Of a DNA stretch of 64,000 bases, positions 1,501-51,819 are shown piece after piece. How positions within the stretch are numbered: the first letter of the stretch is position 1; the number at the start of each line of letters is the position of its first letter. This stretch comes from Selaginella moellendorffii (Eukaryota > Plantae > Lycopodiophyta), in the NCBI RefSeq assembly GCF_000143415.4, contig NW_003314262.1, positions 5,738,304-5,802,303 on the forward strand. The letters run 5' to 3'. The notes below the pieces were generated by a model, which was not told where the DNA came from, did not search any database, and saw nothing but the letters and a program-made list of their open reading frames with translations. A program made the translations under genes and the position numbers.

Positions 1501-1566
1501 ACTGTGCCACACACACACAATATAACTCAGTGTTCTCTCCACTAACAGCCACTAAGAGTGATAGCA

Positions 1567-1995
1567 ATGGCTTCTAGCACCAAATCTGCGTCGCTGCTTC
1601 TCCTCCTCGCCCTCTTCATCGCGATTCACCACTGCGGCGCCCAGCTCACGGATTGCCCCAGCGACACCAGCCCCAACGTGGTCTACTACAACACCCGGAA
1701 CACCCAGCCGGGCAGCGCCTTCCAGAGAAATCTCTCCAACGTCTACCGCCGGATCATCAATGGCGCCACATTCCGCCAGGGATCGATCTCCTACAACGCC
1801 GGCGTCGACCCAGATCGCGTCTACGGCTTCTCGGCGTGCTTCGGCGGATTCACGGCGCCCGGCGATTGCGTCCAGTGCCTGGTCGACATCAGGGCGAATT
1901 TCGATAGCGTGGCGCCGCTCGCTGTTGGCGCGCGTATGTGCTCCAAGAACGGCGAGAGGACGTGCTACATGCGTTACGAGAACTACAGCTTCTAG
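1567..1995 (+). CDS. Secreted single-domain DUF26/Ginkbilobin-2-like cysteine-rich protein, intronless
   Basis: Signal peptide (LLLLLALFIAIHHCGA), GSAFQRNL, VYGFSAC...DCVQC, AVGAR and terminal CYMRYENYSF align to Gnk2. Confidence 0.9.
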   Translation: MASSTKSASLLLLLALFIAIHHCGAQLTDCPSDTSPNVVYYNTRNTQPGSAFQRNLSNVYRRIINGATFRQGSISYNAGVDPDRVYGFSACFGGFTAPGDCVQCLVDIRANFDSVAPLAVGARMCSKNGERTCYMRYENYSF

Positions 1996-2212: not shown

Positions 2213-4442
2213 ATGGAGTCCTCCACCGCCGTCGGGCCGGCTGGATTGTCGCTCACATCGGCGGACAGGCTTCGCATCTATCGTAAGTGTTTCCATGACC
2301 TGGACGAGCATCTCGCGCAACTCCACCAGGAAGGATTGGGCCCAAGCGATGCCGAGTTTGTGGCGCTCCAGGCCGAGATTCGCTGCTTGGAGGAGCTTAT
2401 AATGCTCTTCACGGACATCACGTCGATTTTGCCCTCGATCGCGCCCAAATCGTAAGTGGTGCTTCCGCCCAGTCAGTTTGTTTTGTTTCGGAGTTACTTG
2501 GAATGCTGGCGACTAAAGGTTGCTTTCTTTCTCGCTTCAGAGTAACTGGAGATGGATTTGATCCTTCCTTACCGAGTGTTGACGGGTTGAATCTGTCACT
2601 AGTTACAGATATCTTGATGCTAAGCGCGACTTCCCCGTGGACAGTTTTTGTGGCCGAGCGTTCCCAGGTGATCGATTTCTCAAAAGTTTTACTCATCACT
2701 TTCGTGTTCAGTGGCAAATTTGCTATGTCTCACCGAGCGTGAAGCGCGCGTTTGGTTGGAAGGCTTCTGAGCTTTTGGGAGTTCCTGCTTGGGATGGTTG
2801 TCACACGGAGGACATTCCGACTTTGCAGCGTGTAAGCTCCTTTTTTTTCATTTCATCCTTTTAACACAAGGAATTTCTACATGCTAAGGTATTGCAGATG
2901 CTGCTGTTGAAAGAATGTGCAACAACTGGAACTTCTTTAGTGTATAGAAGGCTTAGAAAGGATCGTTCGTATGCTACTGTTCAAGCGACTGGCCGTGCTG
3001 TTGGAACCAGGTAGTTCCTTTCTGACTGCCTCGGCTTGTTCAGAAAAACTGTTTGTCCTCGCTTTTCAGGTGGTATGCCTGGGTGGAACAAGACATCATC
3101 AACAACAACGCATTGGTAAGGCTGGACTAATTCAGGAAGTTAACTGAATGGGCTTGGTCTTTGCAGAATGGAACTCCTCAGGCACTCGACGTTCTATCAG
3201 ATCTTCCTCTGTCCTTGCCAGCAAGCAAGTCTAGCACTAAAACAAGATCAGCAGACTCCGAAGGTGGTCCAAGTATTCGCTCCCGGAAGCTTTCTAGCAC
3301 CCAAAGGCCCACGTTAGAAGCCGAAGGAAATACACGAGGATGGAACAGCACCGCTCGTCCTGCTTCTCCGCTGGCATTATTGCCCGGTTTGGAAAGACAA
3401 ACCAGGCCTTCAAAGAGCAGAGGGAACGGTGAGAATGCTGAAGCGCACAGCGCAAGCCAACATTCCTTGGAACCCGATAACATGGCTGATGAAAGCCAAG
3501 TCATGCTCAAGGTACCTTGTTCATCTTCTAGTAGGTGTTGAGACTGACTTAAGTTTTCCTTAGTCTCAGGGAATGAATTTGCCCACCTCATCTCATCTCA
3601 GCTTCTCAGGGTCTGTATTCCTAAGCCGGCTGTTATCGTGTATCACGAGTCGTTTGTCGAACTTATTTCTTATCTAGATCCGAAACACAGCCCGTGGAGA
3701 AACTGAAAAGAGGAAAGGCAGTACACGACGAGGGTGGAGCATCAAAGCCAAAGGTTCCAGGTACTCCCTCCCAAGTAGCTGCTTCTTCGAGGCCCGCTAG
3801 TGCACAACAAATTAACGAAGAGGTTGATCTTCTTTGGGGAAAAAAGGTGACATTCTTTCTACATTTAAGTTTAGAGCCAACCAAGTCAGTGTTTTTAATT
3901 GCAGATTTTGCTGGTTGAGGATGACCGAGTTAATAGAACTATAGCACAGAGGCTTCTGGAGAATCTCAAGTGTAACGTGAAAGTAGCGTGCAATGGGAAG
4001 GAGGCCTTGGATATATTACAAGAGGGAGCACCAGTGAAGGCGGAGGATATTGAGGAAGGAAAGGAGATACCTCCGCAATTCGATCTCGTCTTGATGGATT
4101 TGCTAATGCCAGTGATGGACGGAACAAAAGCGGTGAGTGCTAGCGCTTTCTCTTCTCAAGTTTGTGAGCTCACAGCGATTCTACAGGTTCAATACTTTCG
4201 GGATTGGGAGGCCGAGCAAGAACCCCCGAGAAAGAGGATGGTGATTTTTGCGCTTACATCAAACGTTAGCGGTACGAAGAAATTTTCGTTTTCTCCTTTC
4301 GAGTTCCAAGGATCTCTCCTTTTTTTCTTCCTGGTTTTTAGATGGCGATATGGTGAAGTGCGCGATAAGTGGCTTTGATGAGTTTGTGAGCAAGCCATTG
4401 ACGATCGACAAGCTCATGGATCGTCTCCAGCCCAAGCACTGA
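2213..4442 (+). CDS. PAS domain + C-terminal response-regulator receiver protein with no histidine kinase domain (~534 aa, 11 exons)
   Basis: Exons 2213-2451, 2541-2667, 2712-2831, 2889-3010, 3070-3115, 3167-3511, 3564-3610, 3678-3822, 3905-4132, 4187-4271, 4342-4442 join in frame (1605 nt). PAS: ICYVSPSVKRAFGWKASELLG...CHTEDI...YRRLRKDRSYATV. REC: ILLVEDDRVN, FDLVLMDLLMPVMDG, IFALTSN, GFDEFVSKPL. Confidence 0.85.
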
Positions 4443-7500: not shown

Positions 7501-9635
7501 CAACAAAGGTTCTGGTATTGACGGTCTTCTCTCGTATGCTTCTTTCACACTTGCGGCTATTGCTCAAGGATTGGCAGCACAAGGAAGACTGAGCTTGTCA
7601 TCGATGCTTACAACGTCAGTTCCTAAACAGCGGGCAAGACTGGGAGCGCTGACACAGCTGGCTTCATTAGAGCAGGGTGCAGCAGCTCTACGGCAACCTC
7701 GCTCAGCTGCTGCATTTTTGGCACTGGCAGCGATCCTTATGCTGGAACAAAACGCGGATAATTCCTCCGTGACCTCGGATGCAACGTTATCGCTCGTTTC
7801 CTTGAAGGAAATTAGCTGCCATGGTTTGGAAAGCTCTCCGTGCACCATGGGCCTTCTAAGCCATGTTGACGACAGGGGAGTATGGAAAAAGAACGGTGGT
7901 ATGCTAACCAGTTGGCATGGAATGAGGGACGGGTACGTGGGAGTTTTACTTTCAAGGCTTAGTTGTGGGGGAACCTTCGGTTCCGAGCAGGCTTGCACGG
8001 CAGGACTTCACCTGATTCTTATATCTCTATTAGGAAGCTCTCCAAAGACAACGAATGACTGCTCGGAAAGTGAAGCCTTCGAAGGTGGCGCAGGATTATC
8101 TCCCTCTGGGGTCTTATATTCAATTTCAGCTCTCGCTCTCTGTTTACCTGGAGGTGCATATCGTGATATATTACTTCGAAAGGAGTCGCTTCTCACGTTA
8201 CTGAGCTTGCTTTCGAAGCGGCACTTAATGCAGCTGCAAGTTTGGGAAGGATACAATGGGGGCAGTACCGGTCTTACGGAAGTTGTACACAGGGTCTTAG
8301 ATATCCTGGAGTTCTCATTTTCATCACAGAGCAGTCATGGATCGCCACGCAGTTCTACAACTTCCTCCTCTGCGGTGGCAAATTCCCCTAGCAAAGCCAA
8401 CGAAACCGATCTTGGCAAACTTATTAGCGCCAACATGTCTTTGTACTGGCAACTTCTGCACGAGGTATGGGTTGGAGATGTATAGCTGGTTTTTGCTAAT
8501 ACGTTTCGACAGTGTCGCGCCGCATCACCTTTGGTGAGATGCCTGGAGTTTCTTAGCATGAACGACATGATAAGACCTGTTGCATTTGTGTCCAGAATGG
8601 TTCAAAGCTCCAGGCTTCTAGCCATTGACATTGTGAAAGAAGGTTTACTTTCTCCACTTTTGATGGCGAAGATGCTAGATCCTTCAAGTCCGAAGGACGT
8701 TGTCCTCGACGTCTTGATGACAGTTTCAAATCTTGCGCGAATGTCTAAGGTTCGATAATCGTTTCCCGAGTCTTATGTCGTGCTTATGTTGCCGTTCCAG
8801 GACTTCTACGAGCCGATTGGAGAGGCTTGCATTTGGGACTCTTTTAAGACTTATCTGGTTCATGGGGATTCAAACGTTCGTGCCAGGTGTTGCAGTGCTC
8901 TGGGCAACATGTGCAGGCATACACCTTATTTCTACGAGGCTTTGGTAAGGTTTCCAAATTCGCGTTGGCAGTTTGCTAATTATTTTACAGGTCTCATACG
9001 ACCTTATCAAGCTGTTAATAGACAGGTGCGCAGACCCCGATCGCCATACAAGAAAGTTTGCATGCTTTGCAGTAAGCTCATTCCCAGTTGTGTTCTCAGC
9101 TTACATGTTCCCTTGCCTAGGTTGGGAATGCCGCTTACCACAATGATCAACTGTATGAGCAACTACGACGCGCAATCCCGCATCTCACTAATCTTCTACT
9201 AGGAAACGAGGAAGACAAAACCAAAGCCAATGCCGCAGGCGCTCTCAGCAACCTAGTCCGTAATTCGAGCAAGCTTTGTGAGGATATTATTTCTCAAGGC
9301 GCAATGAAGGTAGGAATGTCTTTTTTTTTTCTTTTAAGATGCTTAAGACTGCAGACTGTGATTCCCAGGCTCTGATTCAAGTAATAGCTGATTGCTCGTC
9401 CGTAGCTCTGTCATCGGGAACGAAAGAAATCAATGCCGAGTCTCCACTGAAGATTGCCTTATTCTCAGTGGGGAATATGTGCATACATGCTCCGTGCAGG
9501 CAATATCTTCGGTCTTTAGAACTTTTCCGCGTCCTTCTGCAACTCAAGAACTCTACAGATTCCACCATCATTAAGTACCTCAACAGAATTATGTGCAAAT
9601 TTCCAGACATCTCTGCGCAGCAGACTCGATCTTAA
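4566..9635 (+). CDS. TIO: FUSED-type Ser/Thr kinase TWO-IN-ONE with C-terminal ARM/HEAT repeats, multi-exon
   Basis: [88 protein letters not shown]; C-terminal [43 protein letters not shown]. One GC-AG intron (4923-5016). Confidence 0.95.
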
Positions 9636-10052
9636 GACTTTCTTTGATCTATATGAGAGGTCTGGGAATGCTTACTGTACTGAAAGCTGCTCTTAGTTCA
9701 GATATCAGATATTCGGGTGATATCAGTATTTTTGACAACATATCTATATATATGGTTTTCCCGATGCAAAAGATGCGTCCCAATTATTTTCGAAGTGAAG
9801 CAATGTCGGTCGTTCAATTGAAAGACCAAAGCTTTTACCTTTTCCCTTTGGTATAGCGATTTTTCTGTTTTTTCTGCGGCGAAGAAAGAAACTATACTTA
9901 TCTACGTCACCGGAGCTTGGACATTATATTCATCTCCACAATTGTGTCTCACAATTGGATGGATTTGGATCCTCCACCTTCATAATTTGGAGAATTCTTC
10001 GTCCAAGTTGTTATTGTACCGGTAAGATGCAGTCGCGATGATCACTGGTACA

Positions 10053-12644
10053 ATGCAGAGAGCCATGGGGGTGGTGCCGAGTTCGAGGCTTGCAGAAATC
10101 ATACGGAATGAACTCACGCAAAAAAAGCTTTGCAGTAGTTTCACGCAGGTTGCACGGGACAGGTCGGCTTCCTTTCTTCTCTCTTGGTATAAAGATAAAT
10201 GCAAAGTCGGCAACATAGCACCTCGGTTCGTTTACTTTCGTTCTCGTTCTTGCTGTAAGTTTTTGCATACATGTCTGTTGTTTTGAGCGAGATCTTTTGA
10301 ATGCAGGTTGCGGCTAGCAGAAACGAAGGATGTTGAGTTTTAAGAGGCCTGTTTTGTTGGCTGGAAGACTGTTCAGGAACTCGCACTCGACAAATGGCTA
10401 GAATTGTTGTCTTTTAGTAACGAACTTTGGCTCAAGGTTGTGAACAGGTGATCTGTCATTCCTCGACTCTGTCGACCATTACTTCAACAAAGCTGCAGAG
10501 ATATCATCCGTGGACAAGGGATTGCTGGCATTCATCAAGGTAGACATGATATATGGTTGCTGTTGAATAATGGTTTCCTCTTTTTTTTTTAGGCCTGTAA
10601 CAGCATTATCAAGTTCCACGTTCCCTTGAAGCGCGCTTGTGGGAAACTGGAGCTTATTGAAGGTTACAGAGCTCAGCATTCGCATCACAGGCTTCCAGGT
10701 TTTCAATCAATATCTGGCTAGAAGGTGTTTGAGTATTTCCGTTGTTTTCAGTGAAGGGAGGGATACGACTGGGACCAAATGTAGATGCCAACGAGACTAT
10801 GGCTCTTGCGGCGTTAATGACTTACAAGTGCGCAGTAGTCAATGTTCCGTTTGGAGGTGCCAAAGGCAGCGTCAGGATAGGTAGGTTGTCTGCTAATAGT
10901 CGCTTTAAGTCCTACAGTGTTTTCTGAATTTGGAAGATCCCTCCAAGTACACTTCTACAGAGAAGGAAGCAATTTTAAGGCGTTATACTGTCGAGCTTGT
11001 CAGAAGAAATTACATGGGTCCTGCAATAGTATGATCTGTCCTTCAGTTCCTCCTTCTAAAGAAACTTCTATGTCTTCAGGATGTTCCAGCTCCGGACTAC
11101 GGAACGGGTTCGCTGGAGATGGCATGGATTAAGGTGGGCTTCGCTTTCTACTTTCTGTCATGGATTAAAGTCCTTTTGGATTCTGTAGGACACATACAGT
11201 TTCTTAAGGCACACTGACATAAATGCTTCGGGGTGCGTGACCGGAAAACCAATATCAGAGGTGATCACTTGGATTTTCGTTGTTCTTCTAAACTTCTAAT
11301 CTTCTAGGGGGGAATACAAGGAAGGCAGGAAGCTACGGGACTCGGTGCATTTTTTGTTTTGAGAGAGTTCTTTAATGACGAGGTAGCTTTTGATTTTTCA
11401 ATCAACAATATAACAGCTCCTGGCATTTGCCACAGGATCTTGTACGCAAAGTCGGACTTACTCGAGGTGTAAAAGACAAAACTTTTATTGTTCAGGGTTT
11501 GGGAAACGTTGGTCTTCATGCAAGCGAGGTAAATCGCTAGCTTAAAAGTATACCTGTGCATAAAGGTTTTTCTTTTAGTTTATACACAAGGCTGGAGGTC
11601 GAATAATCGCCATAGCTGAACGCCACGGAGGACTTGTTGACGAGACTGGCAAAGGTCTGGATATTGAAGTTGTTAAAAGTTATCACAAGAAAAACGGTAC
11701 CTTGAATGGATTGCCCAACGTCAAAAACGTAAGTAAAGCACTTTATCTTTCCATCACGTTTCTTACTGTCTGATAGATTACCGACACTGAGAAAATTTTG
11801 GAGCTCCCGTGCGACGTGCTGATACCGGCGGCCTTAGAGTCCCAGATTCATTCCGGGAATGCTGATCGTATCAAGGTGCATTGCATTCGAGAAAGGTTCT
11901 TTTTCATTTTCCAACGCACCCTTGTTTCTCTGTTGCAGGCTAAAGTGATAGCAGAAGCTGCAAATGGACCTCTCACGCCTGCCGCAGACAAGATTCTCGA
12001 AGGCAAAGGCGTCGTTATTCTCCCGGATTTGCTCGTGAATGCGGTATCTGGGTACTTAACGGCGGTGAATTCTCGGAACATGACAAACGCTCCTGCAGGG
12101 TGGAGTCACTGTCTCTTACTTCGAGTGGCTAAAGAACCTGAATCATATTGAATTTGGACGCATGACTCGAAGAATGGAAGAGCATGGGAAGAGAGTAAGC
12201 TTCTATTAATCCTCTCTATTGTTTATCGTCCGAACTTAAGCCGGATTGATACAGGTTCTTCTCAGTGCCTTGGAAAACCAATATGGTAACGGACATAAAA
12301 TCCCGACGAGCCTGCGGGACGAATTATCGAGGGGGTAAGTTCTCAGTCATCCTGTTTTCCTCGTTTCTTAGTTTTTTTTTTTTTTTTTTTCATTTATTGC
12401 GAGCAGCAACACGGAAGTGGACTTCGTCCATTCCGGCTTGGAAGAAACGATGGTCACCGGCTGGGAAAATGTGAAGAAAACAGCACAAGAGAAGGTTAGA
12501 AATACACTCTTCCAGGATTTCTAGCTGAGAACTTCTTTCGTTCTCTCTGTTCTCTCGCAGGGCTGTAGTTTTCGCAAGGCTGCGTATCTGGTAGCAATCG
12601 AGAGAATCGCGAAGAGCATTGGAGACCAAGGGATATTTCCCTGA
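10053..12644 (+). CDS. GDH: NAD(P)-glutamate dehydrogenase, metazoan GLUD1-like type with antenna-like insert; probable mitochondrial presequence; first exons uncertain
   Basis: [115 protein letters not shown]; stop TGA 12642-12644. Confidence 0.93.
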
Positions 12645-12726
12645 GAAGAGAATTTCAAATTTAAAAAAACCGGATATTCCTCTTTTCTGGCTCTCTAGGG
12701 TTTAGCTAGGGCTCTTGGCGACGGCG

Positions 12727-14789
12727 ATGGAGGAGGCGCGGAGGAGGGCGCGGAGGCTGGAGTTGCCGAAATGCCGTGTCTTTGCCTCCGACACAGCGAG
12801 AGGCGGCCGGATCGGCGACGATTTCGGCGCCGATGATCGATTGCTCTATCTGGATTCCTACTCCAAGGAGCGGCTCATCGGTTTCTTGCAAGATGCCGTG
12901 CTGGAGCACCGCTGGGGTGAGGCATCCGGGGTTTGTAGCGCATTGCTTCGCTCGCTATCGCTGTGGTCCAGAAGCCACAAGGACACAAGGCAACTATTCA
13001 CGGTATTTGTGTGCGTTTGTGTGTTTTGTGCAAACTTTGTGTTACTTTGTTCTTCCATTCCAGATGGCTCTAGAAATTCTCGAGAAAATAGAACCCGATG
13101 AGGACAATCACACCCGATACAGGAAGCTTTTTAGTCTCATGTACAGTCAACAGCCACAAACTAGACACCTCGAGGGAAAAGTAAGTGCTTTTCTTCTTTC
13201 TTCCTTTTCTCATGAAAAATGTCCAGAGACTTCAAGGCGAAGTGGAATTCCACCTAGCAATTTATCTCTTGAGTGTAGGGGACTGGGAAGGTGCTTATAA
13301 CACTTTAAGAACGTAACTTCTTCGTGCTCTTGGCTTTCGTTTCCCCACGCAAACTAAAACTTTTCTTGATTGGGATCACAGAATAGCGGATGGTGCTTTG
13401 CGTGACGATCCGGGAGTGAACTTAACGTATGGCCAGGTACTGCATCATTTGTGGTACGAGCAAGTATGTGAAGAAGCAGGGATTAAAGACGTGAGCGAAG
13501 GTGCTGGTTCGTTTGGGGATTGGCAGCCAGAAACTCGAAGTGGCGATGAAGCTAAGGCCGTCGGAGAGGAAGAGTTAGTCAGAGACGTAGACGACGCAAG
13601 CGAAGAATCGAAAAACTCCACCTTAGCCGAAGTAACCAGGGACAAGCCGTTGAACAGAAAGCGGAAGAACTCGGAGGCTTCTGAGGATGATGATTTCTGG
13701 CCAAATGCTAGAGTCGAAATACAGCCAAGTAAGTGTTTCCTTTGTATTGACTCGTGGGGATATGGCTTCTAACTGGCGTTTCAGTTATGGATAGGAGATT
13801 GTTTCCTGTGCAAATTCCATACGAGCAGCCCAATGTTGAGTATATAGTTCCTTTATCACCTCGTTCGAAGGAATTTTACGATAAAGCCGTTGAACACTTA
13901 CAACGTGCGATTGCGTCGGCACCAGAAATGCTAGCAGCGTTGATTTGCCTCGTGCAAGTTCGTAGTAATTTTTCTTTTCACTATTTTTATGTTTATTTGT
14001 TCGTTTTTGCAGTTGTTACTTGCGACTGGCGATGTTGAGGGTGCTAATAAGGAGATCCAAATATGCTACCAGGCTACAAGGCATATCATACCATTAAGGT
14101 ATGGATCTAAGCACTTGTCGTGACTATTTGTCACTTGCCTTTAACAGCTTACGAATACTTCTGCTCGAGTCGCTCTCCGAGAAGGACTGGAATAGAATGG
14201 CTCAGTGCTACGAGGAGATACTGAGCCATAACCCGTCGTCCGTGGATGCCATCACTGGTTTAATCGGCTTGCAGGAGAAAGGTTGACTTCCATATCCGAA
14301 GTATTTGTAGCTGACAGTCGCTAGTATTACAGGTGAATATGCTACTGAATTGCTTATCAAAGCTATTGCCACCCATCTGGACGTGGAGCCTGGCTCAGTT
14401 CATGTTTGGCGTAAGCTTGCCGATTGCTTTATCGAGATCAGCTCACATATCAACAACGACGTGGGAGATATATCGGCTGAGGAGCTTGTTTCTGTGTTCC
14501 TGGACAGAAATTGGTGGATAACCAAGCACTTCCCTGAAAACTTAATAGCGGCCGACGAATCCGGTATGCTGGTTTCATTCTTCGATCCAACTTAAGTCTC
14601 AAACTTACAGCAAAGCGGTGGAAGATGGTTACCTACAAAGCTGCCTGCGCTGCTCATATATTTGGATCTTCTTTTTCGTATGTGACGAAGGCAACATATA
14701 TCTTGAAAGAGCTCGACAAGAAGCGTTTTCTGGGCAAGTTAACATCACACCAAGAGCAGTCCTTGAACTTGCTAGCAGAAGGTGCTTGA
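12727..14789 (+). CDS. TAF1A/Rrn11-like RNA polymerase I TBP-associated factor (TPR-like helical protein), multi-exon
   Basis: LQDAVLEHRWGEASGVCSALL, NLTYGQVLHHLWYE, EMLAALICLVQLLL, IATHLDV...VWRKLADCF, RNWWITKHF and YKAACAAHIFG resemble the plant TAF1_subA family; stop 14787-14789. Confidence 0.7.
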
Positions 14790-16082: not shown

Positions 16083-18224
16083 TGCTGCCGACGATGACCA
16101 TGGCGTGGTTCCTTCTTTCGCTTTGTCTGGGATCGATGCTAGCGCATTCCAGTGGCGCTGCTGGGATTCGTTTCCACAGTAGACGAGCCCTGCAAGCGCC
16201 GGATTCTGCGTTGCTGGCTCCCTATCAGGATATTGATCCTCGATCCTGGGCCCCTTTTCTTCCACCTCCAGTAGCTCCTTCTCCCAGTGAAGACCCACAG
16301 TCGTTCCAATCACCGGTTTCTTATTCTCCTCCATCTCCAGCATTCCCAGTTGCTACATCACCTTTGCAAAAGCCTGCTGCGGTGGTTCTTCCCGCTTGGC
16401 TAGCGACTGCAGCTCCAAGTCCTCATTCACCAGGTACGTTTTCTCCGAGGAAAAACAAGGAAACTTGAAGAATTGAGCTTGTTCTTCCTGTGCAGGGCCT
16501 TTGCTTGCAAAGCATGAGCTTGACGAAGATCAGGGGCTGCCAAAGCTCACCAAAGGCATGCTGCTTACAGTTGTTCTCGTCCCAACTCTGCTCGGGGGCT
16601 CAATCCTGTTCTCGACTTTCGTTGCATGGATGTGCCACCGGCCTCCATCTCTGAGGCATTCGCCGGCTGGTAGCCAACGCAGTGACGGATACTCGTCCGG
16701 TACGTCGGTACTCGCTGGTTGCGGTTTTGTAACTGAGCTATTCTTTTGTAGGTGGTTCCGGACGAGGCCCGTTTGCACCGTGGCTGTGGGGACGTAGTTT
16801 CAATGCCCCTCGAAAGGAACTCGCTCATTCTTTCGAGTTTCCTTTGCTCCAGGCAGCAACTAGCAATTTCGGTACTGCCAACTTGTTAGGAGAGGGCGGC
16901 TCTGGACGCGTTTACAAGGCACGACTAGACGACGACTGTTTTGCGGCAGTTAAATTATTGTTTAGCGAGGGGAAACAAGCGGAACAAGGATTCCAGGTTG
17001 GTTTTTCTAGATATTGAAGCAAGACTAGACATTTATCTTCTTGGGTGCTGTTTTTCCAGGCTGAGGTTGAACTCTTGAGTGGGATTCGCCATCCGAATCT
17101 CGTCTCCTTGCTAGGATTTTCCAGCCACGGAGATCAGCGGCTTCTGGTGTACGAGTATATGCAGAATGGATCTTTGCAAGATCAACTCCATGGTACGTTA
17201 ACCAGGTTATTGTCCAAATAGCTTACACGCTTTTATCCATTTTCAAGGTCCTCTAAAGGGATCGATTCTTTCGTGGCACCTGAGAATGAAAATCGCACTT
17301 GACTCGGCAAGGTAACTTGGATAAAGTTTTTGTGGTTTTCTGAAGCTCATAGTCAATGTCATTTGCAGAGGTTTGGAACACTTGCACGAGCACTGCAACC
17401 CTCTTGTAATCCATCGGGATTTTAAATCGTCCAACATCCTTTTGGACGCAAGCTTTAATGCCAAAGTTCGGATGAAACATGTGACTTGAATCGGAATTAA
17501 GCTTTTCTTCATTCTTTACACAGGTTGCGGACTTTGGGCTTGCACTGTCTGCTCCAACTGGAATCAGGCAGGACGAGATCGTTCGGGGAACTCTTGGCTA
17601 TGTTGCCCCGGAATACATCCTGAATGGTAACAAAACATATCCATTGTGCAACACTAGCTCACTGCGGAAAACTTTTGTGCAGGGAGCCTCACGGAGAAAA
17701 GTGATGTGTATGCATTCGGAGTTGTTCTTCTGGAGCTTATAACTGGGAGAAAGCCGATCGATCCATCCATGCCAACGGGATCTGAGTCGCTAGTTACTTG
17801 GGTATGTTGAATCCTTGTCTTGAGCCTTTTGGTTCTGAGAGGTTTCTCTTACTCTAGGTTCTGCCGCTCTTGGGGGATCGAGCATCGTTGCCAACGGTGA
17901 TAGATCCTGTTCTCCAAGGAACCGTGGATACAAAGCATCTCCATCAGGTGAGAAACTTTGTCGAAGGTTGTCTGAAGGTTGTCTGATGGCCTGCTTGTGT
18001 AAATTTTCCAGGTTGCTGCAGTAGCAATGCTGTGTGTGCAAGCAGAGCCGAGTTATAGGCCACTCATTGCGGATGTTGTGAATTCCTTGATCCCGCTCGT
18101 TCCGATTGAGCTGGGAGGGACATTGCGTGTTGCAGAGACGGTGCTCGAGAACAAGTCATTTGCGGCATTGCAATGGAACGTATCCTCCAATGACTCCATT
18201 GTATATGGGGAGGATGCTTACTAA
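16082..18224 (+). CDS. Receptor-like kinase with short Pro/Ser-rich ectodomain, one transmembrane helix and a Ser/Thr kinase domain, multi-exon
   Basis: Signal peptide, PPPVAPSPS ectodomain, [112 protein letters not shown]. Confidence 0.92.
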
Positions 18225-20229
18225 CGTTTGTGTATGTTTAACTCTTTCGTATTTGAATTATTATTATTACCATTGAGACTAAGTAATTTCTCAGAGAAAT
18301 GATCCTCGTCACTTGTTCTCTAACTAAAGGGACAATCAAAACCAGAAGATAATATTAGTTAAAAAACCTGAGAGACAATAACACGGTTGAAGTTCTCCAT
18401 TTAAATTCTTGACACAGAAATTCAATGGTATTGCTCTGGAGATTGGTGGAGATCAATTTATAAGCTATGCACGATCTGGTTGTCAACATCTTCTTTGCAG
18501 ATTGCAATCCCTGGATATTAGTAAAAGAGTTGAATAGTGAGGAAGATTATTTTCTTGAGTGCATGTTGCAACCAAGATTTTTGAGCAATTAAGAAAAAGA
18601 AAGTAGTACCTCATCATTTATTTTTTGTTAACTCTAATAAACTTCACATTATGAAAAAATAAAAACTTATTTTTTTAATAAAAAATAAAAGAGATTAATT
18701 TATTTATCGTGTAATAAATGCCTGTAACAATGTAATAGGGCTATACACTTGCCAGATGTCAAACTAAAGTAATTTTATATTCCACATGAATATACTATAT
18801 ATCACCTCACATTTGGCAAGAAACTATGCAACGTCCATAGATCACACTACCTCTCCAATGCAATACAACATGTAATTACTCATTACTATATAAGTACAAC
18901 CAAGCAATTAGATGCAATTGATAGTGATCATTGATCTTCTGCGATGAGGACGGCCTAGCCGGCAGCACGAGCCCATTCTCGGAGAATCGAGACACGCCCG
19001 GCATGGAGAGAAGCTGTGGCCAAGGTCAAGTTAAATTTTCTAATTTTGGAATTATAGGTGACATATTATTACTAGAATAGTATGTAGGGAATTGCTTAAC
19101 TATACTATATAATCTTAACAAGATTGAAGTGTATAGTAAAATAAGATTAAAGTGTACATCAATCATCAAAGTATGTATAGTATGTATAAGCTCAGAACTA
19201 ATTTTGTTTGATTTCTTAAGGGTATTAAAGGAGTGAGTAATAGTTTGTTTTATTTATTTCTATAAAAATGTAAAGCATGTGATTTCGACCATGGTGTATA
19301 TGATAGCCATGAAGTAAAACTTAACCCTTGGACATATGTAATTGAGTGGGTTATGAGTTTTAGGGCCTTCTATAAAGAGTGCCAATATCAAGCCTAATAT
19401 ATAAAATAAAGTAAATGAAATATAACACTATCACATGTTTCCACATATACACAAATAATATTTACCTCAAGAATAAGTAAAATATTACACCCTCAAAGTT
19501 ATCCTTTTCTATCTGACATAGACATTAGCTAATCTTGTAAAGTATTTCTAAGAGATTCCATATATAAATTCAAATATAGGTTGGTAATTACAAATTCCCA
19601 TTTATATATGTATTAAAAAAAATTATTTTTCATTGAGCACTACTATTAAGAAAACCAACCATTTCTTGAATAAATAAAACATTTATATTTATAAACATAT
19701 TTTATAATTTATAAACACAAGATTAATCTTATTATATATATCAACCCATGAAATGGTAAAATAAACTAGAATATACTAATAATTATTTAAGAAATGTTAT
19801 AAATAAATTATAAATAAAAAATTAATTTAAATGAATAACAACTGGTTAGATGGTAGAATATCCTAGAATACCCAAGCATATTCTATGTATATTCACTACC
19901 ACTTACAAATTGAATATTATACTCTTACAGTAGAGAGAATAAAGTAGAGTGTAAAGTTGGTTCTGAGTGGAAAAGTATTCTTAATAAGGGAACCTTGAAG
20001 AAGATTGCACCCAACACACAATGATCCCAAGCATAGAAGAGTGTTAAGCAAACATAAAAACACAGAGTTTCAAAACATCTCTAGCACTCCAAGCTTCTTG
20101 GCCGCTCCAAAACCAGCCTCCATATGCCACCAGCCCCTCTTGGGTGCTGCAGGGCCTAAGGTCATCACATAACAACATATCTTTCCTGATTTAAAATATC
20201 AAACTTAAAATTAAATCAAGTGCTAGTGA

Positions 20230-22011
20230 CTAAATACTAAACCCTCTCATTGCTGCCCGAGTGCCAATGGAGGAATCATAATACATGGCACATGCACCCA
20301 GCAAGCACTCCCACTCCAGTGCTTCGTCCTCAAAGGGCATATTGAGGATCAAGTCCTCAGCAGCAGCCAGGAAACCAGCTCGCCCAAGCAGATCAACCAT
20401 ACAAAAGAAGTGTTGCCTTGTTGGTGAAACTCCATAGTCCATAGCCATTGAGACCAAGCAACACCTCCCAGCATATAATCCCCCCGCACGGCTACAAGCA
20501 ATGAGAAACGAAGCCACACATGAATCATTGGGTGTTACGCAGTGAGCAGCCATTGAACTTAAGGTGAGATCTATTTTGTTTTGTGATAGCTCTCCTTGAG
20601 CATAGCAGGATAGCAGTGCTGACCAAGAGCCAGAGTCTGGATCTGGAATGGTGTCGAAAACACTCTTAGCTTTGAGCGGATGCCCGTTTTGGGCATATGC
20701 ATATATCAATGCGTTCCAACAGGGGGTGTCCCTGTAGAGCGTTCTAGCAAATATTCCCAGCGATTCTTGGATATGCCAGTTTTGGGCATATGCAGCAAAC
20801 ATGGTAGTGCATGAAAAACAGTCCCACTCGGGCATTTGGTCAAATACATACTTAGTGTACTCGAGATCCCGTGCATAGGCATAACCTGATAGGATAGATG
20901 TCCATGACGCTAGGTTTTTCCGAGGCATGTTATGGAACTTCTCTTGTGCTTTCTCTATTTTTCCGTCTTGAGAAAGAAGAGAAAGTTTCAAGTTGCATGA
21001 TACAATATCCAGACACGGCATTTGCCCAAGCATGGCATCCACTTGTCGGGTTTCTCCATGTTGAGCATATGCTAACAACATTACGTTGCAAGCCAGAGTG
21101 TCCAGCTCTGGGATTCTCTGGAATATCTCTATAGCTTCTCTAAGATTTCCACCATGGGCGTTAGCTTTTAGCATAGCAGTCCAAGATAACAAGTTTCTGT
21201 ATGGCATCTCATCAAATATTTGCTTCGAGAGCTCAACGCTTCCTCCCTCGGCATATGCTGCGAGAAGAGCAGTTGAGCAGACCACATCCCACTGTGGCAT
21301 CTTATCATAGATTTCTTTGGCACCATCTAGGCTATTAGCTTCCAAAAATGCAGCCACAAGTACCGTCCAGCTCACCAGGTTCCTCTCCGGCATCTCTAAA
21401 AACACCTTAAACGAGTCGCAGAGATTCCCTACATGGGAATATGCCAAGAGCATTGCATTCCACGACGCAAGATTCCTCTCAGGCATCTGGAGGAATATGT
21501 TTCGAGACTCTACAACCAGTCCGGCCTGAGCATATGCGCCAAGCATTGCTGTCCAGGCAATGAGGTCATAAACAGGCATAGAATCAAACAGCACCTTGGC
21601 ATCTAGCAGATGCCCTTTATCGGCACAAGCCGAAACCATGGTAGTCCAGCTCACAAGATCCCTCGCTGGCACGTTTGCAACAGAAGTTCTAGATTCCCGC
21701 AGATGCCCATCTGCGGCATTTGCTGACATCGACAGATTCCAAGGCATTTGGTCGAAGAGCTCCCGGGCTTCTGCGACATGGCCATTTCGTATGTACGCAG
21801 AGAGCATGAGATTCCATGAGTAAGTGTCCTTGGCGGCAATGTGGTCGAACACGTGGCGCGCATCCAGAGGGCTGCCGTACCTTCCGTAGAGCTGGATGAG
21901 CTTGTTGAGGAGGAAAGTGTCATTCTGGAAGGCTCCGGAGATTGATGCGTGGATGTCAGTAGCATCAGCGAGGCTCTTACAACAATGGATTGCCTCAAGC
22001 CATCTATTCAT
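20230..22011 (-). CDS. PLS-class pentatricopeptide repeat protein with tandem short motifs, ending in a partial E domain (no DYW)
   Basis: Single exon with repeated MPERNLVSW-type ~31-aa motifs; HFFCMVDLLGRAG...LILNMPFE...WECLLGAC; likely start M at 22011. Confidence 0.88.
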   Translation of the reverse strand: MNRWLEAIHCCKSLADATDIHASISGAFQNDTFLLNKLIQLYGRYGSPLDARHVFDHIAAKDTYSWNLMLSAYIRNGHVAEARELFDQMPWNLSMSANAADGHLRESRTSVANVPARDLVSWTTMVSACADKGHLLDAKVLFDSMPVYDLIAWTAMLGAYAQAGLVVESRNIFLQMPERNLASWNAMLLAYSHVGNLCDSFKVFLEMPERNLVSWTVLVAAFLEANSLDGAKEIYDKMPQWDVVCSTALLAAYAEGGSVELSKQIFDEMPYRNLLSWTAMLKANAHGGNLREAIEIFQRIPELDTLACNVMLLAYAQHGETRQVDAMLGQMPCLDIVSCNLKLSLLSQDGKIEKAQEKFHNMPRKNLASWTSILSGYAYARDLEYTKYVFDQMPEWDCFSCTTMFAAYAQNWHIQESLGIFARTLYRDTPCWNALIYAYAQNGHPLKAKSVFDTIPDPDSGSWSALLSCYAQGELSQNKIDLTLSSMAAHCVTPNDSCVASFLIACSRAGGLYAGRCCLVSMAMDYGVSPTRQHFFCMVDLLGRAGFLAAAEDLILNMPFEDEALEWECLLGACAMYYDSSIGTRAAMRGFSI

Positions 22012-22442
22012 AAGGTAACAAGGAAAAAGATGCGAGAGAATATCCCAAGGTCGTTTAGGGCAACCATTCCAAAAGGGTGAAAAAGGTGAAAGGAAAAAAA
22101 TAACGAATTCTTTCTTCCGGGCTTTCCGCCGGTCAGAGCAAATCCCACGGTCCAAAGTGGGACGCCAGGGGCCAATGGAAGCCGCCCGATGGGGCCATCT
22201 ACGGCTGATATTGCGCCTGCCACGACGCTCGGGCGCTCCCAGACCTAGCCCCGGCCCCGGCGCGGTTTAGGTTCGGCACCGAAGCTTCCCCGCCTTCTTC
22301 TCGCCAAAACAATGAGCCGGCATGGAATGGACTTGGTGCCGGTGTCTCTTTTCGCTAACCCTTTGCTCCTCATTCTTTTGATGCGCGCCTCCATCGTGTG
22401 CCGCCGCGCCTAGGGAAGGAAGTAAGCGAGCGATCCAGCGCT

Positions 22443-37042: not shown

Positions 37043-38139
37043 TCAAGAATGAGTGGAATGAGGACATGAATGAGAACGAAGAAGAGGATGAAATGGGCGG
37101 CGAGGGATGGGAGATGGAGAATGAAAGAAATGAGGATTGGGACGAGAAAGATAGTGGTAGTGGAAGTCCTGAGCAAAGTCAAGAGAATGAATTAAGTTGT
37201 CCACAGGTCCCCAAGTGTGTTCCTCAAGTCCATAACCTTTCCAGTCTACCAAATAGTAGAGTTTAGATTGTGAGATCTTGGAATCAAGGATGTTCTAAAC
37301 CTCGTACTCAAACCCATTTTCGAGCTACGCTGGTGGAGGCAAAGAAATAACCCAATTTGGAATAGGACTAGGAATATAAGGCTCAAGGAGAGAGGAGTGA
37401 AAAACGGGGTGAATTTGATATGAAGAGGGAAGTGCAAGGTGATAAGTGACAGGATTAATGATAGCAGTGATAGGGAAAGGACCAAGGCATTTGAAATTGA
37501 GTTTGGGACATGGTCTGGTGGTTGAGATATTTCACCTGAGGAGCCAGACTTTATCCCCGATATTGTAAGGTGGACAATCTTGATGATGGACATTGGCAAA
37601 TGTTTTGTGAGATTCTTGAGCACGATAGAGGTAAAAGGAGATGGAGTTGTGGATTTCCTGGAGGTTGGAGATAAATGCCTCAGAGCGGGAATTTGAATGA
37701 GAGGATTTGGATGCAGAAGGAAGTGAGAGATTGAATCAGAAATTTCAGCTAAAGTTTGCAAAGAAGGGGGAAACTTGAAAGGAGGAGTGAACAGACTTGT
37801 TATAGGAGAACTCAGCAAGGGGAAGGATATCGAACCAGTCATCCTGATGATAGTTGATAAAGCACCTCAGGAATTGTTCCAACATTTGAATCGTTCGCTC
37901 AAACTGTCCATTAGTTTGAGGATGATATGCCGAAGAAAGGTTAGCCTTCACTCCAAGCAGTTGCAAGAACCATTGCCAAAAATGAGAGATGAATTGAGGT
38001 CCCCAATCCGAAACCACATTTGCAAGAATCCCATGAAGTTGGAAAATTTCCCTAAATACCAGTTTTGCCATGTCCTCACCCGAAAACTCCTTGGTACATG
38101 GCAGGAAGTGCACCGTCTTTGTGAAGTGATCCACCAAAA
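37043..38139 (-). pseudogene. Integrase core/C-terminus and chromodomain of the outer element
   Basis: VDHFTKTVHFLP, VVSDWGPQFISHFW, LSSAYHPQTNGQFER, YLVDWKGYGLEEHTWGPVDNL. Confidence 0.9.
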
Positions 38140-39216
38140 TGTAAGCGACTAAATTTTCCATTCTACTTTAGTCACTTAACCACACCTCTGACCACTTGGA
38201 GGAGTCTCATTCACAACCTCCATAAGTGCAATCCAGGACTTGGGACTTGCTAGCCCCGAGAATGGCATCCATGCCACTCAACATTTGCACTTGGTCCAAG
38301 TGCTCCATGTGTCCGATCCCATGACCGACACTCAAAGGTACCACCGACATAGCAGCCCGTTACGCTAAGGCCATGCCCAATCACCTTTGCCACACTGGTA
38401 GTCCAATACCACTTGCATCACAGTCTTGGCTCTCCAAGACTAGGCAAACCATCCGTGAGTGGTCATCTCAGATCCACTCCTTAGCATCCTTAGGATGCCC
38501 ACCGACAAGGGGAATAGCCTTCCCCAATATCCCTCTGTCAGTCCCCACTAAGTCCCTTTCTGCCCCTGGTCGTGTTTGCCAACACTGCCACTGGATCGAG
38601 ACCCACAGGCCCGACCACTAAGTCCCACAGTCCTCTGGGTCTTCCTCACCACACGACTGTGTCCTTGGTCACTACCCCAGAGGACTACTCCTCTTCCTTT
38701 CCACAGTCTGGGCCTTTGGGACAACATCTCGGAACACCGTGGCCTTACGCGAGCCACCTGGGTACTCTCCTCGCCTTCTGCCCTTGGGTGCTCTAGCCAT
38801 GGGCTTAGAGCGGGTTCCGTTGAGCCACACCAGGTATCCAAGTAGGTAGTGCCACCCACACTTGGGCTGGGAGCATCGGCCAGTCGATCTCCCGGGGGAA
38901 CTACAGCCGGCTTTTGAACACTTCACCAAGCTACCCCGCTTGTCGGTCCGTGTTCACTCTAGTCTTGGACTTCCCAGTGGGCAGCTCATCACCCAACACT
39001 GGGTCCGGCCTTCCTGGGCCAAACTGGCCTTTCCTGGCCAAACTGGCTCCACTGCAGTCCTCCCCCTACTATACTTTTGGAGCTCACCAAACCCCCCAGG
39101 GTCTGGGAGACGAACGCTTTGGGCTTTCACCCTCTCGGACTCGGACTCGGACTCGGACTCGGACTCGGACTCAGACTCGGACTCGGGCTCGGGCTCGGTC
39201 TCGTTCTCGGTCCTGA

Positions 39217-39254
<38 letters not shown>

Positions 39255-39778
39255 CCGGTCTCGGTCTCGACTTCGGACTCCATCTCGGACTCCATCTCGG
39301 ACTCCATCTCGGGTCCATCTCGGACTCCATCTCAGGTCCATCTCGGACTCCATCTCGGACTCCATTTCAGGTCCATCTCGGGTCCACCTCGGACTCCATC
39401 TCGAACTCCATTTCGGGTCCATCTCGGGTCCACCTCGGACTCCACTTCGGACTCCAACTCGATTCCATCTTGGACTCCACTTCGGACTCCAACTCGAGTC
39501 CATCTCGGACTCCACTTTGGACTCCAACTTGGGTCCATCTCAGACACTTCCACGTGTCATGTGTTGGTCCTTTTTGGGTCCCTTTTTGGAGCCTCACTTT
39601 TTGCTCGCTTCGTGCTCGTTCCTCGAGCACTTCTTTGGGAGTTCCACTCCCGCTCTTGACTTTTCAAGTCGAAGCTTTTGGTCCAAACGTGTTACGCTCG
39701 TTTGGCTCTCGCTTCAGCCACTACCGCGTGGCACCCTTCCCGACTCCACTTTGGGGCCTAGGGATTTTGTGTCTCACA
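38140..39778 (-). repeat. 3' LTR of the nested element (1639 bp)
   Basis: Near-identical to 43965-45648. Confidence 0.95.
39135..39545 (+). repeat. (TCGGAC)n and CTCGGACTCCAT-type tandem array in the 3' LTR
   Basis: Hexamer run followed by degenerate 12- and 24-mer units. Confidence 0.95.
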
Positions 39779-40779
39779 ACTCCACCACCCATAGACGAAG
39801 TTCGATGTCCTCATCGAACGGTAAACCATTTTGTAAAGTAACACTCGCATGTGTTACCATTTCCATCCTTGGCACCTAGCCAATATTTGTCAATGGTTTG
39901 ACATTGAAGGCTCACCATGCCTTTTGCATATGCCTCAATGGTTTGACACCAAAGGCTCACAATGCCTTGCCTATCCTCTAAGGAGGGTAGTCTCTCCAAC
40001 TTAGAGATTGATTGGACCAGATGTAGTGGTTCTCTCCTTTTATTGGTTTAGTTCTCGCTAAACCTCTTAGAGACCCTTCTCTAAGTCAATCCCACTACTC
40101 CTTCTTGAGTAGTCTCAATTTCCATCTATGGAATGTTTGCACCTTGGAACTTTTACTCTTTTGACTTTTGGAAGTCAATTTCCTAGGTGTCTCCAACACC
40201 TTGCATTGCACAGATTGTGCAACTCCACTTCCCTATCCTAAGAAGTTCATTACTTGAGGGCACCATCATCCTCTCTTCTATTTCGTGCCACCTTAGGCAT
40301 TAAGTTCTATTTATCACACTTTGTGCTAGGGTTGTCCATCGCCCTATCATTTGGCTACCTTACCACTCCCTCCCTTGGAGCTTCCACTTTCGCCAAATCG
40401 GAGTAATTCGGAATCCATCCTTGGAAACACACTTCCTTTTCCGCAATTTGTTAGCGTCCAACACATTAGTGTTCCTCGCCTAACTTTGTCACTTGGATTC
40501 CTTCCCAGGGATTCCACGGCCCTATCTTGGCCACTCATCTTTTGCTCCTATCCGTTGATTGTTGCACCAAGCAACATCGAATCTCTACCTCCCTCCTTGA
40601 GGTATTCTTTTGATTCCATAGCAAAGGCTCTGCTTTGCCAAGACTAGGGTGTTCACCCCTAGTAAGTCTCTTTTAGCATCTTCTGCTGTGGGCTCTATCC
40701 TCAGCCCAACTTTGTGACCCTCTCATGGGTCTCTTTAGAGATTACTTTCCTTGGACACACTATGCCATCGCAATGACAT

Positions 40780-43730: not shown

Positions 43731-43949
43731 ATGAGGAAAACCTTGCACTGTTCCTAAGATCCCAAAGTCGTTCCATTATTGGCCCTTTTCTATCTACCAC
43801 CGCATCTACAAGTTCACACATGAACTGTAATGGAGAGCCATGTCTTCCCGACTTGCTACTCCTCAAGGATAGGCCCACTCCTCGGACCTTCCGATGCCAA
43901 CACTAGTGGTGATATACTTGAGCACCAATAAAAGTCGAACTAAGGAACG

Positions 43950-43961
43950 GCTCTGATACCA
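43950..43961 (-). promoter_or_regulatory. Primer-binding site complementary to the tRNA-iMet 3' end
   Basis: Plus-strand gctctgatacca reads TGGTATCAGAGC on the minus strand, 3 nt inside the 5' LTR end. Confidence 0.95.
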
Positions 43962-43964
43962 AAT

Positions 43965-45081: not shown

Positions 45082-45113
<32 letters not shown>

Positions 45114-45648: not shown

Positions 45649-45653
45649 CAAAA

Positions 45654-51587: not shown

Positions 51588-51819
51588 TGCTGCCGCTTTG
51601 ATTCCTCAATCAAAACGACAATCCACCAGTGTCATATTCCACACAGCCACACAGGGAATCTTCTGAGCTCTTCTAGCAATCCACGATTCCACTCTTGAGT
51701 GCGAGCATTGCCCCGACTTGATCCGATCCATCAAAACCACGGCAAAGAAAACAGAGCACGATCCCAGCACCGCGGCGAGGATCTGGCACGAGGAAGAATA
51801 CGGTCAGCGGCGCGCTCAT
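51588..51819 (-). pseudogene. Truncated relic of the LRR-RLK XI 5' end
   Basis: Matches 33488-33785 (start-codon context, QILAAVLGSC, AMLALKSGIVD) with deletions; no further LRRs. Confidence 0.85.

Follow-up and report, generated by a model that had tools for sequence, protein, structure and literature searches.

A GLUD-type glutamate dehydrogenase gene with a short antenna-like insert in the spikemoss Selaginella moellendorffii

The antenna of glutamate dehydrogenase (GDH) is stated to be unique to animal GDH and to have appeared first in ciliates (PMC11050691). For the ciliates, the same paper cites Allen et al. 2004 and names the GDH of Tetrahymena as the earliest one with an antenna. Plant and other GDHs are stated to lack the antenna (PMC7326016, PMC1716157). 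The GDH1-3 type of seed plants, which shares a plant host with the gene described here, has the role of mitochondrial NAD(H)-GDH (PMC7326016).

The window, a 64-kb stretch of the genome of the spikemoss S. moellendorffii, carries on its + strand a GLUD-type GDH gene of 17 exons. Both NCBI and UniProt already list the gene, and its family is well known. We consider it quite probable that it encodes a GLUD-type, probably mitochondrial paralog with a short antenna and without the animal purine sites, and that it is a vertically inherited streptophyte gene lost toward the seed plants.

Gene structure, expression and family placement

The features of the gene are listed in Table 1. The CDS joined from the ATG at 10330 has no internal stop, encodes 493 amino acids and ends at the stop TGA 12642-12644. 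The first-pass annotation had placed the gene at 10053-12644. Its end was borne out, but its coding start was not. Two upstream ATGs, at 10038 and 10053, lie within the 5′ UTR exon and belong to an upstream ORF, not to the GDH start. Because RNA is spliced from 10254 to 10307, which closes the upstream frame at TAG 10314-10316, the CDS start was moved from 10053 to 10330. A structure that begins at ATG 10053 or 10038 and splices 10254 straight to 10448, as the NCBI model does, was rejected, since the RNA contigs join 10254 to 10307 and a stop is then in frame. The N-terminus of the public model of this gene is probably wrong.

Table 1. Features of the GDH gene, in window positions
Feature	Position	Strand	Encoded part	Remarks
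5′ UTR exon	10001..10254	+		5′ limit approximate; X1 RNA contig begins at 10001; joint 10254->10307 GT..AG
Exon 2	10307..10396	+		CDS start ATG 10330; joints from RNA and translation
Coding exons 3-8	10448-10539, 10593-10698, 10752-10880, 10937-11028, 11080-11133, 11189-11260	+	Substrate-binding and dimerisation domain with the catalytic lysines (10448..11260)	Splice joints, open frame; Pfam PF02812
Exons 9-13 and start of exon 14	11308-11382, 11436-11528, 11579-11728, 11777-11875, 11939-12043, 12099-12146	+	NAD(P)-binding domain up to FEWLKNLNH (11308..12146)	Splice joints; Pfam PF00208; exon-level PDB matches
Antenna-like insert	12147-12194, 12255-12334, 12407 (first base of exon 16)	+	I395-G437	Alignment with orthologs and human GDH; AF2
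Remainder of exon 16 (to 12494) and exon 17 (12561-12644)	12408..12644	+	Pivot helix and C-terminal helix, ending ...GIFP	RNA joint 12494->12561

The 16 introns are 47-72 nt long, which agrees with the short host-style introns first noted and is typical of this genome. All are GT..AG except one GC..AG intron (10397-10447); the X4 contig has it spliced out, and the X1 contig still carries it. As a separate observation, the X1 strain carries an A>T change at 10053. Splice joints were confirmed by RNA contigs from two studies and by raw stranded RNA reads from a third, in which the first mates were antisense, as expected for + strand RNA. Depth in the raw reads was low, about 1-4x over 12% of each of two runs. 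The joint 12334->12407 is missing from the RNA joint table because the adjoining poly-T (12361-12401) was skipped in the read comparison; this joint rests on the NCBI model (P0178) and on a gap-free ortholog alignment.

Residues 24-493 are identical to the NCBI protein named [quoted passage not shown] (P0178). Exon 2 encodes a 22-residue N-terminal peptide with four Lys/Arg and zero acidic residues, which looks like a mitochondrial presequence. The N-termini of the Selaginella paralog and of the Closterium protein have the same basic stretch, followed by GDxxFL. The spikemoss GDH is probably targeted to mitochondria.

P0178 matched Pfam PF02812 (1e-47) and PF00208 (7.5e-60), the N-terminal dimerisation/substrate domain and the Rossmann-type coenzyme domain of the ELFV superfamily. 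The catalytic and substrate-binding residues K94, K118, K130 and D172 (human numbering) are all kept in the window protein. The similarity scores were 455 bits to human and bovine GDH, 306 to Thermotoga GDH, and 260 and 258 to Arabidopsis GDH1 and GDH2. The joined spliced translation served for local alignments and for the trees. The antenna exon alone scored 2.4e-9 against GLUD1 and 0.04 against Arabidopsis GDH1. The seed-plant GDH1-3 type measures about 411 amino acids and has no insert; the spikemoss protein, at its presumed mature size, has 470 amino acids, with the insert. The GLUD1-like motifs on which the initial assignment had relied are all present in the translation (segments of 19, 17, 14 and 11 residues, the first across an exon junction, and DKTFIVQG), and the protein is indeed GLUD-like and not of the GDH1-3 type.

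Selaginella has two paralogs of this kind, the other of which (P0161) is 68% identical to the window protein. The window copy is the faster-evolving of the pair, with a branch of 0.67-0.88 vs 0.21-0.23. At columns conserved to at least 90% it deviates only four times, while 13 other members scored 0-14. Given the long branch and the replacements D123 -> N and Y497 -> I, its properties may differ from the family norm.

Taxonomic distribution and descent

Homologs were searched with Closterium, animal and fern queries and with P0178 or exon stretches. Orthologs were found in Chlorokybus, Mesostigma, Chara, Closterium and Spirogloea (Zygnematophyceae), and in mosses, liverworts, lycophytes and ferns. 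The Closterium entry (P0004) came from a search of 1.84 billion representatives with the stretch 11777-12043, which otherwise returned mostly fragments. No seed-plant protein was present among the 120 matches listed per search of 5.8 billion proteins, including the search with the fern query; gymnosperms are thinly represented among the named proteins.

In a tree sampled without ciliates and without the GDH1-3 type of seed plants, the branching inside the streptophyte clade agrees with the species tree (starred support values 99 and 100/99; land plants 100, also starred). The window copy and the divergent Diphasiastrum protein P0177, which may be orthologs dating from a duplication common to lycophytes, fall in a polytomy. 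Because the clade is species-tree-like and no seed-plant match was listed, an old vertical gene with loss in seed plants is favoured, which was one of the two origins first proposed, an ancient paralog lost in seed plants. On this view the gene descends vertically from the ancestor of the streptophytes and disappeared on the way to the seed plants, which would keep only the antenna-less GDH1-3 type.

The source of the gene before that ancestor could differ. Streptophytes might have acquired it in a separate ancient transfer from a Bacteroidota-like bacterium, instead of inheriting the mitochondrial GDH that early eukaryotes passed on to animals, fungi and amoebozoa as well. The bacterial members are 52-55% identical to the fern protein, level with the non-plant eukaryotes, and the branch joining all eukaryotes apart from bacteria has an SH-aLRT of only 91, and the backbone was drawn open. 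The tree nevertheless places streptophytes within the eukaryotic group and outside the bacterial group, and we regard such a transfer as unlikely. Whatever its source, the gene predates the divergence of Chlorokybus and Mesostigma, and within plants it is an old vertical gene.

The short antenna and the regulatory sites

The 43-residue segment after NLNH that had been singled out as an antenna corresponds to residues 395-437 of the 493-residue model. It aligns to the human antenna with 8 fewer residues (43 vs about 51 in animals). The spacing from FEW to SGL is 57 in the window protein; all non-animal members fall at 55-57 and animals at 65, against about 14 read off the alignment for short GDHs; GDHs of 416-423 amino acids have no insert there. 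The AF2 model of the spikemoss GDH has a pLDDT of 96 and a pTM of 0.92, and the insert block a pLDDT of 88-95. In the model, residues R402-Y420 of the insert form the ascending helix and, beyond a loop, T428-S435 form the short descending one (379-397 and 405-412 in AF2 numbering). VIA-align superposed 463-468 of the 470 model residues on animal GDH, insert included, at an rmsd of 1.7-2.6 A, and 405-415 residues on plant and archaeal short GDHs. Foldseek TMq was 0.93-0.94 to animal GDH vs 0.82 to Arabidopsis GDH. The insert therefore stands at the antenna position and is predicted to fold as the antenna helix-loop-helix, as had been supposed. Two structures considered as plant antenna GDHs, PDB 8QF0 and 8S3G, both proved to be worm GDH; 8S38 is Medicago GDH2.

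The label "animal-type", under which the gene was first described, is a misnomer. The same short insert was found in chytrids, a dictyostelid, a red alga and many bacteria, e.g. Bacteroidota. Uninterrupted bacterial ORFs with the insert came from Sphingobacteriales, Chitinophagales, Saprospiraceae and Limisphaerales, and the model of a bacterial member shows the same helix-loop-helix, with animal GDH as the best structural match. Neither the length of the insert nor its motifs (FGRM.RR.EE ... G..E.D.V.SGLEETM) change from bacteria to ferns, as would be expected of a part under functional constraint.

The short antenna would stand on the coenzyme domain, its helix-loop-helix immediately preceding the pivot helix. 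If it works as in animal GDH, it most likely couples the three subunits of a trimer in their domain closure. A three-subunit antenna bundle in the spikemoss enzyme is inferred from the fold of the monomer. Alternatively, the insert may be a mere surface hairpin of the coenzyme domain that forms no inter-subunit antenna, or the window copy may be a fast-evolving gene drifting to loss of function. A complex predicted from three copies of P0178 residues 278-543, that is, the coenzyme domain and antenna only, gave a score of 0.00, which speaks neither for nor against the bundle. The insert is shorter than the mammalian antenna, and the window copy has its long branch and its changes at D123 and Y497. 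Set against this are the superposition of the predicted insert on the animal antenna and the conservation just described, and the window gene is intact, spliced and expressed, with a number of deviations inside the range of the other members. We consider either version rather improbable.

The first-pass annotation had also considered allosteric regulation. The human residues H213, S217, R221, H262, R265, Y266, R269, K293, E296 and H454 correspond to Q, E, L, H, E, F, K, E, K and H in the window protein. Seven of these ten GTP-site positions are thus replaced and R269 is K, so that only H262 and H454 are kept; the full set of GTP-binding residues occurs in the animal rows of the alignment only. 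The ADP-binding R463, which contacts the beta-phosphate (R519 of the bovine precursor), is T in the window protein, and outside animals position 463 is not R in any member of the antenna-bearing clade. D123 (D179), which contacts the ADP-ribose in bovine GDH, is N, and Y497 is I. The leucine-site residues R151 and D185 are kept. The roles of the residues of the ADP and leucine sites follow PMC9570180. Because the GTP site and the ADP arginine are missing, mammalian-style purine control of the spikemoss GDH appears unlikely. Regulation by hydrophobic amino acids seems more plausible than regulation by purine nucleotides, since the leucine-binding residues of bovine and Thermus GDH are kept.

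These differences also bear on the second origin first proposed, an old gene transfer, here from an animal or ciliate into Selaginella or early land plants. Among solved structures, animal GDH has the top sequence and fold similarity, and published papers assign the antenna to animals and ciliates only (PMC11050691, PMC7326016). However, orthologs occur in all non-seed streptophyte lineages and track the species tree. Animals branch apart from them, in a clade with a long stem of 1.06, and have a longer antenna and a GTP site of their own; forcing streptophytes and animals into one clade cost a delta lnL of 30 (p-AU 0.038). The introns are of the host kind, and no ciliate sequence was identified among the proteins fetched. 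A transfer from animals has no support in these data, and the whole scenario is very improbable. That a non-plant organism contaminated the assembly, for which only the resemblance to animal GDH would speak, is hardly credible, as had been concluded before, since PPR, DUF26/Stress-antifung and receiver-domain ORFs neighbour the gene on the same stretch, the database copy is placed on a 6.18-Mb contig, and spliced RNA was present in same-species runs from three studies.

In our main reading, the family and the short antenna predate animals and ciliates. Both are present in other eukaryotes, in Bacteroidota and in other bacterial phyla. The animal GTP site and the ADP-binding arginine would be later animal additions. 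On the sequences compared, animals may merely have lengthened a short antenna by 8-10 residues and added these sites. With some reserve, we lean towards the view that the antenna is an ancestral feature of a large clade of bacteria and eukaryotes, that the short form lacking GTP and ADP sites, which non-seed plants and Bacteroidota keep, is the original one, lengthened later in animals, where the nucleotide sites arose around it, and that its first role was not purine control. The antenna could, for example, have coupled the closure of subunits or responded to amino acids or acyl-CoA.

The account of the evolution of GDH allostery changes once a short antenna is present in every sampled non-seed streptophyte lineage as well as in other eukaryotes and bacteria. 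In the literature searched, which had subscription journals outside its coverage, no description was found of an antenna-bearing GDH in Selaginella, bryophytes, streptophyte algae, Dictyostelium or Bacteroidetes. If our reading is true, the spikemoss, moss and liverwort enzymes are natural test cases of the ancestral antenna role, and non-seed plant nitrogen metabolism has a second, unstudied GDH route. Physcomitrium and Marchantia, with one or two copies, and the bacterial enzymes offer tractable systems for the function of an antenna that has neither GTP nor ADP sites. That non-seed plants have a further kind of GDH, lost by seed plants, matters when nitrogen and carbon metabolism are compared among land plants.

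Comparison with known glutamate dehydrogenases

The Tetrahymena enzyme is, like that of the spikemoss, a non-animal GDH with an antenna. It is reportedly not regulated by GTP, which would fit the missing GTP site in the spikemoss protein.

The seed-plant enzymes Arabidopsis GDH1 (6YEH) and GDH2 (8OWM) and Medicago GDH2 (8S38) belong to the same enzyme superfamily and have the core fold in common with the spikemoss model (Z 58-59, rmsd 1.4-1.5 A over 410-412 residues). They form a different subfamily, with 258-260 bits and 37-39% identity, and have no counterpart to roughly 55 extra residues of the model.

The bacterial short-antenna GDHs of Sphingobacteriales (P0211), Pontibacter (P0235) and Rhodothermaceae (P0197) are 50-54% identical to the spikemoss protein. 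Their insert is 2 residues shorter, with the same motifs and the same predicted helix-loop-helix. Like the spikemoss protein, they lack the animal GTP site and R463 and end in ...GIFP; unlike it, they are intronless and have no presequence. No studies of these enzymes were found in the literature searched.

Mammalian GLUD1/GLUD2 (PDB 1L1F, 8AR7, 6G2U) are 44-47% identical to the spikemoss protein, at the 455 bits given above. They have in common with the spikemoss model the two-domain fold and the insert before the pivot helix, and the catalytic residues, R151, D185, H454 and a basic N-terminal presequence are found in both. The spikemoss antenna differs from the mammalian one by about one turn off the ascending helix and four residues off the descending part. 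The spikemoss protein is also shorter by about 19 residues where animals have the N-terminal helix region, has T for R463, N for D123 and replaced GTP-site residues, and ends in GIFP where the mammalian enzymes have GVTFT.

Gene structure and start of the reading frame

Three-frame translation of positions 10000-12700 revealed a split glutamate dehydrogenase (GDH) gene on the + strand. All of the motifs quoted in the first-pass annotation, and the 43-residue segment after NLNH (the insert), were found in this translation. RNA evidence on 9500-12900 came from contigs X1 and X4 (two studies) and from the raw stranded RNA-seq runs X21 and X22 (a third study). Fourteen GT..AG joints from the RNA match the exon borders read from the frames. 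The first mates in X21 and X22 lie on the minus strand only, as a standard stranded library should give when the transcript is on the + strand. The joint 12334->12407 is missing from the RNA joint table, in which the poly-T run 12361-12401 is skipped; it is backed by the public model and by a gap-free ortholog alignment.

Features at the 5' end of the GDH gene and in its neighbourhood
Feature	Position	Strand	Remark
DUF26/Stress-antifung domain ORF	1558-1995	+	neighbour of GDH gene
Response-regulator receiver domain ORF	3899-4378	+	neighbour of GDH gene
5' exon	~10001-10254	+	joined to 10307 in RNA
Start-codon exon	10307-10396	+	in RNA contigs; contains ATG 10330
Intron	10397-10447	+	GC..AG; removed in X4 (10396 joined to 10448), kept in X1 contig
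641-aa PPR protein ORF	20230-22155	-	neighbour of GDH gene

The first-pass annotation was right about the gene and its motifs but not about the start, which it had put at 10053. An ORF from 10053 (or 10038) runs into TAG 10314-10316 once the start-codon exon is included, and since the RNA contigs include this exon, the coding start moves to 10330. The upstream ATGs open an upstream ORF ending at that TAG, and the GDH frame beginning at ATG 10330 encodes 493 residues. The first 22 residues are basic, with no acidic residue, and are followed by a 10-residue segment; a basic stretch and then GDxxFL are also present at the N-termini of the Selaginella paralog and the Closterium ortholog. The strain of one study carries A>T at 10053.

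The GC..AG intron sits directly 3' of the start-codon exon. If it is retained, the frame would end after 23 residues, two codons inside the intron. Because it is retained in one study's contig and removed in another's, with an early stop on retention, its splicing may be regulated or inefficient.

The gene, itself unstudied, is already catalogued and belongs to a known kind of enzyme: P0178, the NCBI protein [quoted passage not shown], is identical to our model over residues 24-493, and the N-terminus is the sole difference. In the public model translation begins at ATG 10038, and 10254 is spliced straight to 10448 past the start-codon exon, a joint not shown by any of the four RNA runs (X1, X4, X21, X22). 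This database match and the plant-type neighbours exclude contamination as the source of the gene, which had earlier been called unlikely. Elsewhere in the window, 18001-20000 and 50001-58000 are composition outliers (GC 0.26-0.31), and 38001-46000 shows a strongly negative GC skew (-0.20 to -0.27).

Family placement and the modelled insert

The stop-free stretch 11777-12043, which reads through one in-frame intron, was used as entry query against representative proteins and matched mostly fragments and P0004, a Closterium protein. A word search with P0004 gave the family members including P0178, and all later searches took P0178, whole or as residues 74-543, as reference; exon references were used against PDB. 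P0178 carries two ELFV dehydrogenase domains. Against all PDB sequences its bit scores were 450-456 for human and bovine GDH and 423 for worm GDH, compared with 300-306 for Thermotoga GDH and 258-261 for Arabidopsis GDH1 and GDH2 and Medicago GDH2. The exon with FEWLKNLNH and the start of the insert matched GLUD1 at 2.4e-9, the alignment running 11 residues into the antenna, and Arabidopsis GDH1 at 0.04 only. By these scores the protein does not group with plant GDH1-3, in line with the first reading of its motifs.

The insert aligns with the human antenna throughout, with four small gaps totalling 8 residues. In the AlphaFold2 model of P0178 (91 family members; pLDDT 96, pTM 0.92) it forms two helices, of 19 and then 8 residues, joined by a loop, and the long pivot helix comes next. 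Foldseek TMq was 0.93-0.94 for animal GDH versus 0.82 for Arabidopsis GDH. On animal chains VIA-align placed 463-468 of the 470 residues (rmsd 1.7-2.6 A), whereas on plant, archaeal and bacterial short GDHs it placed only 405-415; the extra ~55 residues are thus predicted to superpose on the solved antenna, and the segment models as the antenna helix pair suspected from its position. Three antennas may intertwine in a trimer; a prediction with three copies of the coenzyme domain plus antenna spoke neither for nor against this.

Distribution of the insert and ancestry of the gene

In the alignment of all matches the insert is present in every clade member, alongside GDHs of 416-423 residues that lack it. 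It occurs in bacteria (Rhodothermaceae, Sphingobacteriales, Chitinophagales, Pontibacter, KSB1) and in the non-plant eukaryotes Batrachochytrium, Furculomyces, Polysphondylium and the red alga Rhodosorus. FEW-to-SGL spacing is 65 in 96 of 98 animal proteins; it drops to 57 in most streptophytes and to 55 in bacteria and most eukaryotes. Among species-representative bacterial genomes, contigs of Sphingobacteriales, Chitinophagales, Saprospiraceae and Limisphaerales carried uninterrupted ORFs of 465-477 codons. The protein searches gave further matches in a Pontibacter isolate and in Gemmatimonadetes and Acidobacteriota, the latter two on long MAG contigs. The short antenna-like insert is carried by bacterial GDHs of 467-478 aa (P0197, P0211, P0235, P0250, P0393, P0394) that share 46-48% identity with human GDH; their sources are Bacteroidota, Rhodothermaceae, KSB1, Gemmatimonadetes, Acidobacteriota and Limisphaerales. 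The Sphingobacteriales protein models with the same helix-loop-helix at lower confidence (block pLDDT 68-90), and in structure it is closest to the GDHs of human and cattle (TMq 0.91-0.92, identity 46-48%). No solved structure of these bacterial enzymes was found in the PDB copy searched, and no paper on the plant or bacterial short antenna was found in the literature searched, which has most subscription journals outside it. The insert is not animal-specific. The antenna exists in plants and bacteria and probably predates animals and ciliates, a testable point of wider interest.

The best matches came from Closterium, Spirogloea, Chara, Chlorokybus, Mesostigma, Ceratodon, Physcomitrium, Sphagnum, Marchantia, Riccia, Diphasiastrum, Selaginella (two genes), Adiantum and Ceratopteris. 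A second search, in databases including NCBI nr and UniRef, used a fern protein, the query likeliest to reach seed-plant orthologs. Its 33 best matches were the same streptophyte set; the bacteria and other eukaryotes that followed did not exceed 57% identity, and no seed plant was among the matches listed.

An old gene transfer had been one of two origins suggested for the gene, the other being an ancient paralog lost in seed plants. The main tree, of 73 sequences with short GDHs as root, unites the streptophytes in a single clade (support 99): Chlorokybus and Mesostigma are basal, the streptophyte algae come next, and land plants (100) follow. A careful tree focused on the streptophytes agrees, with 100/99 both for streptophytes and for land plants. 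Animals stand apart as a clade with a long stem (1.06), and in the main tree they lie inside a group (99) of 21 rows that takes in a chytrid, a kickxellomycete fungus, a dictyostelid and unnamed sequences. A constraint that put streptophytes and animals together in a single clade lowered the log-likelihood by 30 units (p-AU 0.038). On these trees and searches the gene is not a transfer from animals but an ancient streptophyte gene, passed down vertically and absent from seed plants among the matches listed, which agrees with the second of the suggested origins.

The terminal branch of the window copy is 0.67-0.88, versus 0.21-0.23 in the paralog, and its placement within land plants is a polytomy. 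Among columns conserved to 90% or more it deviates at only 4 (range 0-14 in 13 other members scored). Being intact and expressed, the copy looks functional. Selaginella (P0161, P0178) and Diphasiastrum (P0160, P0177) each have one slow-evolving and one fast-evolving copy.

Residues of allosteric control

Allosteric residues were mapped with frog GDH as ruler, human mature numbering being checked against the 1L1F alignment. Only animals have the complete GTP-site set H213, S217, R221, R265, Y266, R269, K293 and E296; in the window protein these positions read Q, E, L, E, F, K, E and K. Bovine R519 (= R463) binds the ADP beta-phosphate (PMC9570180). R463 is T in the window protein and is Arg in no non-animal member of the antenna-bearing clade. 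H454 is kept, and is W or Y in most plant orthologs; D123, a ribose contact, is N in the window copy, alone among plants. R151 and D185, the leucine-binding residues of bovine and Thermus GDH, are kept throughout the clade. The first-pass annotation had considered allosteric regulation possible. With the GTP-site residues and R463 replaced, mammalian-type purine-nucleotide control appears unlikely; the retained leucine-site residues make activation by amino acids possible. The C-terminus of the window protein ends in aromatic-Pro (..GIFP), as PMC9570180 describes for the Thermus enzyme.
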